Source: Octopus bimaculoides (lineage: Eukaryota). From it: a stretch of 64,000 nucleotides of DNA. The stretch is taken from assembly GCF_001194135.2 (NCBI RefSeq), contig NC_068988.1, forward strand, positions 50,390,022 through 50,454,021, given 5' to 3'. The position numbers and the translations under genes were made by a program. Shown here one piece after another: positions 15,601 to 36,600 of the stretch (position 1 is the first letter of the stretch; each line of letters opens with the position of its first letter). A model generated the notes under the pieces. That model worked only from the letters and a program-made list of their open reading frames with translations. It did not search any database and had not been told where the DNA came from.

Positions 15601-18600
15601 AAAACCAAAAATGTTTGTGGTGGTAGAGGTACAATTTTAGTACTTGTTTACTACTTATTCTACCAATCTCAGAATGATGAAGGGCAACTTCAAGGTACTA
15701 AAAGATATAATTAACTATTGTAAGGCTTTTTGTGAAGAATTTTTTTCTTTTTTCCACTCAAATGAATTAAAAAATATACAAAGATGAGTTTCAACAAATA
15801 TTGTGTATGTTTAAATCAAATATATTTTGTTAATTTTCATTTTTCAAATCTAAACTTTTTCCTTGTTAAGAAGCCACTTATAATTTTTTTTTAATTTACT
15901 TTCTTTTCTATTGCAGTTGCTGGTTGAAGATTGATAATTACTTTATACTTAGCTTTGTGGTACCGGTTGGCATTATAATTCTTGTAAGTAATGAAGATGT
16001 ATATATATATATTTTTTTTCCTTGTTTATGAATAATAATTCACACCTGAATTTGAATTTTGCAATTTAATTCATTCAATGGAACTGAAAAGGATATATAA
16101 TTCCATTGGTCTTATTTCATCTGCCTCTGGGAAATACATTCCAAATCTTCTTTCAGTGTTAACATGTAATAACCAGACACAGGAGTGGGAAGAATTAATC
16201 TTTCACTCTTTAGAGGTTTGCACAATCTATATGCATGCACTGGCTTTATGGAATGGTCATGATAGTTTTTATGATAACTACAAATTATCTAGTTGGGGAT
16301 GCTCCAGCATAGCCAAAGCCTGCTTTCTGGAATCAGTAGGACAGTAAAGAAAAACAAATATTATAATTTATGATCTATACTCTCTCCAAATTTCATTTTG
16401 TTTTAATACAGGAGCTATTGTGAAACGGTTTCCCTTGCTCTTGCTTTAATCCCAGCTGTTAATCACATTCTTTATTGTCTTCCAGATTAACATGTTCATG
16501 TTGCTCTTAGCAATATACATGATGCACACTCACGCCAACACTGCTAATTCTAAAGAACGGTCAACTAAAGAAAAGATAAAGTAAGTTCAACTCTTCAATA
16601 ATGTCATACTTTATTTAATTTTGATTGATTTGTTGGGTGGTTAATTAATATTACTTATTGATATGTTTATTGTGTGTGACTTTTATAGTTTTGTTGTTCT
16701 TTTATTTTACTTTTATTTTGTGAAGCGATATATCTAAAAATAATAATATTGGCTGTTATTATTAATATCATTATTCAGTGATGATGATAATATAATAATA
16801 CTGATTTCTTAAATGGGCAATATTTGAGGAAGGGGAAAATAAACATTGTGATATTCATGCCTTTCCCAAGTGTATTTGTAATGTATGATAGGCTGAGAAA
16901 GTCAACAACTCTTCCATGCATTCTTCAAATTCAAGCTGAAAAAAATACTTAATTTTATCCTATGAAGCTTAAATACAAAGAGAAGCTTGGAGATTTGGGA
17001 TGAAAAAATGTTGTAGCCAGGGTTGTGACACAAGAAAACCCAAATGCAATCATCAATATTAATAATAATAATAATTATTCATGTAAGTGAATAGCTGCTT
17101 CTCATCCTTCCTTTTCATTCTATAGTATTTGATTGCTATGGTTTTGCTCCTTACAAAGCAGGGTAGAATAATAATTATTATTAAAAATAATAATAATATG
17201 TGTGTATAATATATATATAATGTATATATGTATACATACACATTTACTGTTGTCCATATATTTTTGGTGCTATCAAGGGCAAGCTATTCTATTTGTGCTG
17301 GCACAAATGTTCATTAGGATGCCCTTTCTACCGCTAAGTAGGGAGTCAAACATGTTTTTGTTGAGACAGGCAGGCTTGAAGAAGCATAATTATGAGCCTT
17401 GCTCAGAGACTGCAACACAGAATCTCTAGTATAATAGATGTAATAAACATCTGCCCATATCATCAATAGCATAGCACTATAATTTTTACATTCATTGTTC
17501 TTCTCACTCTCTCCTTAACCTGATGAAATTGTTTAGGCTCTAGTCTCTTTTCTAACCATATTACACTAAGGAAAAATTGAAGTGTGAAAGACCAATGTTT
17601 CTAGATCAAAACATACAGTAGTACAATATTAGAAAAGTATAATCAAGAGAAAAACTGAATATTTCATATATCTATTTGAAGAACTTAATTTACTAAATCA
17701 TTTGCAATTACTTACTGTATATTATTTAACTTGCTCCATACAAAACACTGAGACTGCCCCTGGCTCCTTTGTTACTGACATGCCTGAATATTGAAAGCTT
17801 TCATTTCTAAATTAAATTTCCACTAAAATCTCATTAATAACTGAATGAAGAGTTTGTAGGAAAAGTTCCAATAATGTTTTTATGTAGGAACCTTTTATCA
17901 AGTTGTACTACCAATAACAGTTTAATATATTCAATGAAAAAACAATACTGCTATTTTACTAAATCACTCTGATGTTAATTTTGAAAATCAATAACAATAT
18001 ATAGCAGTGTATACTTGGAAAGGATTAAACATTTTAATTCACTTGTTGCTTAAAAATATTATAAAAATTCCTTATTCTTGTATAACGCTGAGTAAATGTT
18101 TTGCATTTGTTACTTGATTAGTGATGGTGGTAGAGTATGTCTTTTGTTTTTATTTGTTTTTGTTTTCCTTTCTTGAAGAAAGGAAAAATTTCTTTTCATT
18201 CATCTTTATTTTGTTTAGTAAAAGTTGAGTTCTTCAATATCTTACAAATTATTAAATAATTTTGTTATAAAAACTTAGATAAAAAAAAAAAAAACTCACT
18301 GGTACATTGGCTACAAAGTAGGATAACTGAAAGTGTGAATGTATTAGAGAGATTCTGTGTCTCTACATTAAAAATATGAAGGAAACTAGAAGTTTGGGCA
18401 TGAATCACCCACACTTAACTACTTGCTTAAAAGATAATTAAATATGTGTGTGCATGTGGGCACAGTGTGGCCAAATGGTTGCGAAATGTGCTTTGCAACC
18501 ACAAGGTCATAAGTTCGAATCCATCATGTGGCAGTTGAGAAAATGTCACTTTTTTTATTGCCTCACTCAGCCTGAGTGAGTAGATGCATATCATCTGGAT

Positions 18601-33600: not shown

Positions 33601-36600
33601 TTAGTTGTGAATCAAGTACACACACATGCATTCATGCACTCTCTCTCTCTTTCTCTCTCTCTCTGTCTCTCTCTCTCTCTCTCTCTCTCTCTCTCNNNNN
33701 NNNNNATATATATATAATGTACCAAATACGTTATACTTTTAAGAAATGTTAAAATAGTATGTGAATAGAAGAATGAAATAAACTAGTAATAATCATTTCC
33801 TTTTAAAATTTATTTTAATACATGTATTCTAATACAAATTTCATAACAAATTGAATATATTAAATGCAAGAAGAAAATAAAACAAAAAGAACTTGGTTGT
33901 TCAGCCATATATTTTCATAAGCAAATTTTACATGTTCTGTTCAACTTGGTCCATAATTTTACACACACACATTCGTATATATATAATTTATAAATTGTAG
34001 TGTGTGTATGTGTGAAAATGACCAGTCAGTTGTGAAGGAGCCAAAAAAGAAAATCTTTATAATCACCTCTTTGGAAAATAACTCTCAGTTATTTGTGGAA
34101 CAGTATCATGCTGAGAACATTAGAAGTGAGAGCTTATAAACTTGTATTTCATTTAATGTATCATAGCAAATAAGGAGTAGCAATGAGAACTAAGAGCAAA
34201 AAATGTTGGACCGATTTACAAGCTGTAAGTTTCAAGGGTTTTGTTGTACTGCAAATAAAGCACTTTGTTCTACATTACCTCACTTATCTTAGAGGAACCA
34301 GATTATCTGGAATATTACTTGTGCTCAATTGAGGATCTCCTTAGATCTCCAAACGTAGGTTAAATCTATATTTTAGAATACAAGACATGAAGAAATAATG
34401 TTCAGTCATTTGCTAATTAATAACTGATAGATTTTCATTTTGAATTTACATCTCTCTATTTCTTTTATGTCATAGTTGTGTGAATGAGATGGGAAACTAA
34501 AATATTGGTTTCAGGTCCATACCATAAATTCCATACAAATGCTCTCGTTTGCTATGGTCATTGTAATCTTTATGAACACATACTTTTGCTATTGATCATC
34601 TATAGCTAACCAATGGAATGTGAAAGTGTTAGTGTCAGATGCTCCTTGAATACATTTCTTTATTAATTCATTTCATTATACACGTTAATTAAAGGCATGC
34701 ATATTAGGTTTTGAACAAGACATCTAAATATTTTTCTATAAATTTATTGTTAATAGATGAAATATCTTTCTGAAATTAAAGTATCATAATATCTGTGTTA
34801 TGATAATGTGTGTTGTTTTTCATGCCATACTAGTTCTTTAATAAATTTTCAGGCTATTAATTATGTTTCTTGTTTTGTGTGTGTCAGTATACTTGAAAAC
34901 AAAACATTGCTAATTAAGTTAGTTAGTACTAGGCATTATTGATAGTTAATTACATACAAATGTTATGATCTTTTTTTGTATATATAAGAAATAATTACTA
35001 TTATTTTAGCTGTGTCAGTTTAAGTAGGGAGATAAACAGGAATCTCCCCTAGTTGCTACTCTCCTTTACTGTGATGTCACATTTTTTTCTTTGTATATCT
35101 CACTATTGTTTTCTCTATTTCAGAGGATGGATCAGAGCTGCTTGGATACTGATCATTTTGCTTGGTCTCACTTGGATCTTTGGTTTATTCTATGTAAACC
35201 AAGAAACACTCTTCATGGCATACATTTTTAACATTCTGAATAGTCTACAAGGATTTTTTATTTTTATTTTCCACTGCCTTCTGAATGACAAGGTAATTGA
35301 ATACAAATTTTCATACTTCCTTTTTTGATCTTTCAATATATTAGTTCCATTTTGATACAACTTTCATTTCAACTCGACATATCAATCCACTTCCTAAAAA
35401 TCTTAGAAAGGAAAGATAATAATATGCACTCTTAGCAGGGTCTAGTATGCATGAACAAGATGGTTGAGTAATAATCCTTATCTTTCATTGGTCCTGCTTG
35501 AGGGTGGAGGCACAATGGCCCTGTGGTTGGGTCAGCGGACTCGCAGTCACAGGATCGCGGTTTCGATTCCCAGACCGGGTGTTGTGAGTGTTTATTGAGT
35601 GAAAACACCTAAAGCTCCACGAGGCTCCAGCAGGGGATGGTGGCGAACCCTGCTGTACTCTTCCACCACAACTTTCTCTCACTCTTACTTCCTGCTTCTG
35701 TTGTGCCTGTAATTCAAAGGGTCAGCCTTGTCACACTGTGTCATGCTGAATATCCCTGAGAACTACGTTAAGGGTACACGTGTCTGTGGAGTGCTCAGCC
35801 ACTTGCACATTAATTTCACGAGCAGGCTGTTCCGTTGATTGGATCAATTGGAACCCTTGACGTCATAAGCGACGGAGTGCCAACAACAACAACCTGCTTG
35901 AGGATCCAACCAGATAATTTGTTGATGATGGCCTCTGGCTAGGATCCTTTGTGAAGCATACCTGTCAAACCCTGCCTTCACAACCCTCAGTAGAATAATT
36001 GGGTGAAGAAGCTAGATTGATGAATGTTTTGTTTATATTTGACCTAATTTTATGATTATTAAATTCTTATATTTTTTCCAACAGGTTCGCAAAGAATACA
36101 AAAAAGCTATCAAGAGCTCAACTTGGCTTCCAGAATGTATTAAACCGTGTTGTGGAGCAGCCTCTACTGAAAGATCCTCAACTCCAAATCCTTCAACATC
36201 TTCAGGAAATGTAGGTTTACCTGTATTCTCTTTTCCTTTGAATTATGTATTTAAATGTGAAATACCAGAATACATAATGTACTCGAGCTCATATCTGCTG
36301 TTGGCATTTCACTGTCTATGAGCAAAGCTTTTACCTTACATTGTTTACTTTCCCTAGCTCTTGATAATAGACCACAGATCCTCTGAGCATGTTTCTTGCA
36401 AAAATAGGTCTCCTACCTGGTGAGAGATTTATCTCTCATCCACTGCAATTTATGAAAGCAAAGTTGAGCAGTCTTTTGAAAGACCCTTGATACTAAGAAG
36501 ATATTTGCATTCCACAGTTTATAGTCACAAAGTAAAAGAATAGCAGAATTATTTTTTCTCTTTATATAGACTTGTCTTTCAAAGACATTTCCAATCAAAG

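Follow-up and report, generated by a model that had tools for sequence, protein, structure and literature searches.

The latrophilin gene and its largest intron

The window analysed here, a stretch of 64,000 nucleotides (nt) from Octopus bimaculoides, holds on its plus strand the 3' part of an adhesion G-protein-coupled receptor gene, which sequence comparison places among the latrophilins. An intron of 18.5 kb interrupts the third intracellular loop (ICL3) of this receptor, and this intron very probably contains one conserved alternative cassette exon of 75 nt. The exons of the gene were read off the sequence and then confirmed via homology. They are listed below, with TM denoting a transmembrane segment.

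6517-6619, plus strand: exon A
13150-13300, plus strand: exon B
15269-15335, plus strand: exon C
15917-15983, plus strand: exon D
16486-16580, plus strand: exon E, covering the last part of TM5 and half of ICL3 (the first); a 31-residue peptide followed by AA
35124-35292, plus strand: exon F, completes the split codon with one base and continues with GWIRAAW...HCLLNDK (TM6-TM7)
36085-36210, plus strand: exon G
37357-37426, plus strand: exon G2, a small extra exon of 70 nt; its 23-residue peptide matches the cuttlefish FISKLWSRKRKTSSTSNSIKTPTR
37841-38706, plus strand: exon H, terminal

The spliced seven-transmembrane (7TM) region matches the Pfam family 7tm_2 (E = 9e-60). Its closest matches in the PDB are ADGRL3 (E = 2e-75) and ADGRL2 (E = 4e-74), while ADGRL4 (1e-54), ADGRE5 (1e-50) and ADGRD1 (1e-39) are more distant. 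The colinear cuttlefish ortholog carries SUEL_Lectin, GAIN, GPS and 7tm_2 domains; the hormone-receptor domain HRM is not among the domains listed for it. Because of the closeness of the 7TM region to ADGRL3 and ADGRL2 and the domains of the cuttlefish ortholog, the naming of the gene as a latrophilin (ADGRL/Cirl-type) is sound. The preliminary description of this locus had called the gene a latrophilin, which agrees with these matches at an E-value of about 1e-75. In the tail of the gene, no Pfam match to the Latrophilin C-terminal domain was found. To our knowledge, this domain is vertebrate-specific, so that its lack does not bar latrophilin membership. The tail resembles those of invertebrate latrophilins (DCSVI.SE.VSEYC...SEC).

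The cuttlefish protein P0173, introduced in the next section, has no tblastn match in the window before residue 729, and the exons of the N-terminal domains lie upstream of the window. Exon F is supported by the same search, and exon E is 77% identical to P0173 and was also aligned to ADGRL3. Splice sites were scored with a position-weight matrix that was checked on the exons of this gene, whose acceptors score 8.7-13.3 and donors mostly 6.5-7.9; exon E reaches 8.7 at its acceptor and 7.6 at its phase-2 donor (AAA/gtaagt, the slash marking the splice site). Located between exons G and H, exon G2 removes the phase mismatch of those two.

Exon E ends in ...AAG ATA AA/gtaagt and exon F begins with tttcag/A GGA TGG. 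Therefore, the intron between them (16581-35123) is in phase 2 inside a Lys codon, and it splits KEKI/K-GWIR in ICL3. The split point lies between TM5 and TM6, and the alignments to the ADGRL3 and ADGRL2 structures run unbroken across the junction. With 18,543 nt, the intron is the largest in the window, the runner-up having 6,530 nt. Both its position in ICL3 and its rank, as stated in the preliminary description, were confirmed from the boundaries of exons E and F and the intron lengths. Its parts are as follows, with SINE standing for short interspersed element.

16581..25826, plus strand: upstream half of the intron, 9,246 nt; microsatellites and SINE-like repeats, without homology-supported coding sequence
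25800..25826, plus strand: 3' splice region of the cassette, a polypyrimidine tract and UGCUGCAG (ttccttctttccctccgtactgctgcag)
25827-25901, plus strand: alternative cassette exon, 75 nt, phase 2-2, donor CC/gtaaga
25902..35123, plus strand: downstream half of the intron, with an assembled length of 9,222 nt; includes a 10-N gap and a 49-nt poly(A) besides microsatellites and repeats
33696-33705, no strand: assembly gap of 10 N, flanked by (CT)n and (AT)n microsatellites; purely intronic

The gap, which overlaps neither an exon nor a candidate exon, follows the cassette at a distance of 7.8 kb and precedes exon F by 1.4 kb. Since the cuttlefish mRNA is colinear across it, running from exon E through the cassette to exon F, the order, orientation and frame of the exons are unaffected, and the intron length alone is approximate.

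A conserved cassette exon, optional in cuttlefish

When the cassette is skipped, the split codon reads AA/A and encodes Lys, giving ...KEKIK-GWIR.... When it is included, the codon reads AA/T and encodes Asn, and 25 further Ser/Thr-rich residues follow directly before TM6. The evidence that this exon is used comes from a cuttlefish cluster, which consists of Acanthosepion pharaonis ADGRL1 (CAE1264301.1) and transcript contigs from Logan. Within this cluster, P0173 (1334 amino acids, aa) equals P0043 (1309 aa) plus 25 ICL3 residues exactly at the E/F junction, where a 26-residue peptide stands between ...KEKI and GWIKG.... This insert is identical to the cassette peptide of the window at 25 of its 26 residues. 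P0173 is encoded by contig L003, a 4,952-nt mRNA with an uninterrupted 1334-aa open reading frame, which was assembled from larval RNA-seq of Sepia esculenta (whole-larva RNA) and contains this 75-nt block at the E/F junction. Ten other cuttlefish contigs (L004-L013), including one from the project that also yielded L003, join identical flanks directly, and what separates them from L003 is a clean insertion of 75 nt with exon boundaries on either side. Since L003 includes the block and the ten other contigs join the flanking exons without it, the cassette is optional in cuttlefish. The deposited A. pharaonis protein and most of the cuttlefish contigs represent the skip form, and only forms of +0 and +75 nt occur among the members of the cluster.

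In a tblastn search of the window with P0173, the cassette was the only match within the intron (E = 6e-9), and it was colinear with the remaining exons. At the nucleotide level, the window and cuttlefish versions of the cassette share 86.7% identity. Nine of the ten differences are synonymous, and the remaining one changes Leu to Phe; assuming that a quarter of changes would be synonymous by chance, our own binomial estimate for this bias is p ~3e-5. Protein conservation of the cassette amounts to 96%, compared with about 68% for exon F, which encodes TM6-TM7. Because of the cuttlefish match and the synonymous bias, the 75-nt exon is real, and both lineages have preserved this frame as coding. 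It thus exists, has evolved under purifying selection and is optionally included in the cuttlefish ortholog.

The surroundings of the cassette provide further observations. A 49-nt poly(A) run at 25959-26007 begins 57 nt downstream of the cassette donor and is followed by TA/TG-rich microsatellites. From this nearby poly(A), the 75-nt block was at one point considered to be the 3' end of a retroposon, an idea that was dropped after the match to the cuttlefish mRNA. The UGCUGCAG motif at the 3' splice site is a lead regarding neural microexons rather than a test. Neural microexons measure 27 nt or less, or up to 51 nt in wide definitions, and the cassette is longer at 75 nt. No paralogous copy of the cassette was found anywhere in the window by sequence comparison or by tblastn of P0173.

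The region directly before TM6 is a G protein contact in class B2 receptors. Inclusion of the cassette adds 25 residues and a K-to-N change immediately N-terminal to TM6. Given the established role of the loop and the precedent of exon E24 in mouse Lphn3, the cassette may tune G-protein and/or arrestin coupling, and its eight Ser/Thr residues suggest phosphorylation sites.

Weighing a single cassette against other readings of the intron

The preliminary description had proposed a modular array in this intron, in which up to four cassettes with lengths of 75, 33, 36 and 36 nt are combined to diversify ICL3. All four are in phase 2-2 with lengths in multiples of three, so that any combination would stay in frame, and one of the four, the 75-nt exon, is real. 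Furthermore, the ortholog of the nemertean Tubulanus polymorphus has two different inserts at this site, making more than one cassette possible in principle. However, phase 2-2 exons of such lengths necessarily stay in frame, and the number of candidates does not exceed chance. The four candidates came without coordinates. Among AG...GT-bounded, stop-free, phase 2-2 stretches, the intron has 17 candidates of 75 nt, 28 of 33 nt and 23 of 36 nt. Between 9 and 300 nt, the correct phase yielded 805 candidates; the wrong phases gave 929 and 523, and the antisense strand gave 965, 571 and 936. The scored candidates were also compared with dinucleotide shuffles:

acceptor/donor score cut-offs 0/0: 98 observed, 94.6 +/- 12.5 in shuffles
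acceptor/donor score cut-offs 4/3: 6 observed, 11.3 +/- 4.0 in shuffles
acceptor/donor score cut-offs 6/4: 2 observed, 2.7 +/- 2.0 in shuffles

As a class, the frame-preserving candidates are therefore not more than chance, matching the wrong-phase, antisense and shuffle controls. No intron candidate scores as high as constitutive exons at its acceptor and donor alike. The cassette itself has an acceptor score of 6.4, compared with the 8.7-13.3 of constitutive exons, and a donor score of 3.1. It alone among the 75-nt candidates scores positive at both sites. Nevertheless, position-weight scoring by itself fails to separate it from chance, as it is one of the six candidates with an acceptor of at least 4 and a donor of at least 3 and falls outside the top two.

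The remaining members of the proposed array do not hold up individually. The 33-nt variant (25827..25859, plus strand) shares the cassette acceptor and would use an internal GT (CTCT/gtgcgg) with a donor score of 2.7. This GT arises from a CTG Leu codon for which cuttlefish has CTC and hence no GT, and the variant was seen in none of the cuttlefish transcripts examined; its GT was not accepted as a genuine alternative donor. The two best-looking 36-nt open frames were judged to be chance. The one at 29694-29729 (plus strand) encodes a 13-residue peptide without a homolog match and combines an acceptor score of 3.1 with a gtttaa donor of -6.2, and the one at 31586-31621 (plus strand) has the same acceptor score and a gtataa donor of -1.5. 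They encode an identical peptide because they lie in the two copies of a 92-nt direct repeat. These copies, 29669-29760 and 31561-31652, are 96.7% identical and 1.9 kb apart, and the second one follows a tRNA-like SINE head in antisense orientation (ggtgctctaaccactgagccat, within about 31493-31560).

Thus, of the four frame-preserving candidates, the 75-nt exon was substantiated by cuttlefish mRNA, whereas the 33-nt and 36-nt candidates look like chance occurrences, the former depending on a GT that is absent in cuttlefish and the latter being repeat copies with poor donors. The broader idea that ICL3 is diversified by modular exons survives as one conserved 75-nt cassette and not as a combinatorial array, which is very improbable given the chance-level counts, the exclusive +0 and +75 forms in the cuttlefish cluster, and a cassette without paralogous copies in the intron.

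The weakest reading holds that there is no functional alternative exon in the window species, with the 75-nt block being a relic or confined to decapod cephalopods and the intron merely large. In its favour, no transcript from the window's lineage turned up, though the searched index also misses cuttlefish proteins, and constitutive exons have stronger splice sites than the cassette. This reading is nevertheless highly improbable: the cassette retains its open frame, polypyrimidine tract, AG and GT as well as 25 of 26 residues, the substitutions relative to cuttlefish run at 9 synonymous to 1 non-synonymous, and a relic would have decayed. Beside exon F, by comparison, the intron shows only ~85% identity, with many indels, to a much closer relative. 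This last comparison is based on a genomic contig of a related species (L001), to which exon F is 98% identical at the nucleotide level; it is the only orthologous genomic contig of a close relative that entered the analysis, and it covers 34700-35499 only.

We therefore put the probability that the 18.5-kb ICL3 intron of this cephalopod latrophilin holds one conserved alternative cassette exon, at 25827-25901, at roughly 0.88. Several points weigh against this. Inclusion was assembled in one cuttlefish run, compared with skipping in at least 14 runs, and the included transcript may be a minor or restricted form. For O. bimaculoides itself, we infer inclusion from conservation only, and an effect of the cassette on coupling would follow by analogy. 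Splice-site scores alone would not single out the cassette (6.4/3.1; one of six). It has no detectable similarity to the vertebrate exon E24 discussed below, the alignment showing a shared Asn only. Finally, further lineage-specific cassettes may exist, as the two different inserts of Tubulanus at this site indicate.

Other searches of the intron added no exon. A 27-nt candidate at 19332-19358 with a very strong donor was ruled out, as it lacks a polypyrimidine tract and homolog support. A homolog of the vertebrate peptide NYEDNRPFI was sought in the intron, and nothing rose above the wrong-frame and antisense controls. Mollusc insert peptides used alone in tblastn yielded noise with E above 0.1, and one such match at 22315-22350 was dropped since it does not extend to a donor. 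Three protein searches, with the spliced 7TM region, with the open reading frames around the top candidates and with exon E, cassette and exon F combined, returned neither a cephalopod transcript nor an orthologous intron contig; none of them recovered the cuttlefish proteins P0043 and P0173, although both belong to the searched collection, and these negatives carry no information. Rfam and tRNA scans of the window gave no matches. The remainder of the intron is ordinary non-coding DNA made up of microsatellites and SINE-like repeats.

Elsewhere in the window, a repeat of ~190 nt, probably a SINE-like interspersed element, occurs in four copies that are 74-76% identical (19576-19767, 31885-32078, and on the minus strand 46730-46917 and 60680-60835). 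A 169-aa open frame on the minus strand at 61692-62198, containing EIMIWDRKEKLCTVVEISCPANVKIK, resembles a piece of a retroelement. Downstream of the gene, repeat-rich sequence contains three more assembly gaps, at 41292-41638, 58860-59334 and 61078-61179.

Optional ICL3 inserts in other latrophilins

Invertebrate homologs were collected by a representative-protein search with exon F, followed by a cluster look-up for names and isoforms. This search returned many invertebrate latrophilin-like proteins, several of which have inserts at the ICL3 junction:

Mytilus californianus: skip form LQKIK-SW; include form LQKI-NGEPNSGSSSGSTNINDKSHLSPELP-SW, whose insert of 26 aa begins with Asn and adds a net 75 nt, with the same K-to-N switch
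Mizuhopecten yessoensis (scallop): skip form reads R; include form with a 26-aa insert (net 25 aa, 75 nt)
Tubulanus polymorphus (nemertean): a 70-aa insert, a different 29-aa insert or none at the ICL3 junction (isoforms P0195, P0192 and P0193)
Centruroides (scorpion): skip form present; include form with a 13-aa insert (SEDPNSQQRIVIM)
Copidosoma (wasp): skip form present; include form with a 17-aa insert (SGKEENALPNKLQAHLV)

The net inserts of Mytilus and Mizuhopecten have the same length as the cephalopod cassette, 25 aa or 75 nt, and those of Mytilus and Pinctada start with NG, as the cassette does. Among the mollusc inserts, the five that were compared (Mytilus, Pinctada, Mizuhopecten, Plakobranchus and Biomphalaria) all end in (D/E)(L/M/V)P before TM6, where the cephalopod cassette has DIP, and a Ser-rich middle is common to mollusc inserts. 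In the whole intron, the motif (D/E)(I/L/M/V)P together with GT occurs once, at the cassette, which also ranks first among 3,601 window-wide candidates by similarity to bivalve ICL3 inserts. The identity of the protostome inserts to the cassette is low, at about 20%, and not significant by BLAST alone. Since the pairwise similarity to the bivalve inserts is weak by itself, homology of the cassette across molluscs is probable rather than proven. The arthropod and nemertean inserts are unlike the cephalopod cassette in both length and sequence. Tubulanus shows that a multi-cassette arrangement exists elsewhere in spiralians.

For genome annotation, the exact coordinates of the cassette are of use, because ab initio splice scoring would miss this exon among about 800 look-alikes. 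Beyond annotation, ICL3 splicing is one of the few known ways of setting the G-protein preference of a latrophilin, with mouse Lphn3 E24 as the known case. A selected optional insert of 25 residues in cephalopods, together with one of equal length in bivalves, suggests that this switch is old and general. The cephalopod latrophilin offers an invertebrate system with a large nervous system for testing it.

In vertebrates, exon E24 of mouse Lphn3 lies in ICL3, and its inclusion shifts coupling between Gs and G12/13 (PMC10830413). Lphn2 has a site corresponding to Lphn3 E24 (PMC10830413, PMC6629964). That vertebrate latrophilins vary in this loop, as the preliminary description had stated, is thus documented for both receptors (PMC10830413). 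A comparison of PDB sequences shows the change at the homologous codon, DNI[K]SW in ADGRL3 and EKI[K]GW in the window: in ADGRL3 isoform 4 (8vti_B) relative to isoform 1 (7sf7_A), K is replaced by NYEDNRPFIK. The vertebrate Adgrl3 exon differs in size from the cephalopod cassette, with 27 nt compared with 75 nt, and the relation between the two is best described as positional homology only.

It is a tentative proposal, which we hold at somewhat less than even odds, that an optional exon at this phase-2 Lys/Asn codon of ICL3 is an ancestral feature of bilaterian latrophilins, represented by E24 of vertebrate Lphn2/3 and by the inserts of molluscs, nemerteans and arthropods, and that it would switch G-protein/arrestin coupling everywhere while the sequence of the insert has been turned over. 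What Adgrl3 E24 and the cephalopod cassette have in common is the receptor family, the intron position and the phase-2 Lys codon just before TM6, together with a frame-preserving exon whose inclusion switches Lys to Asn and which occurs in both include and skip forms.

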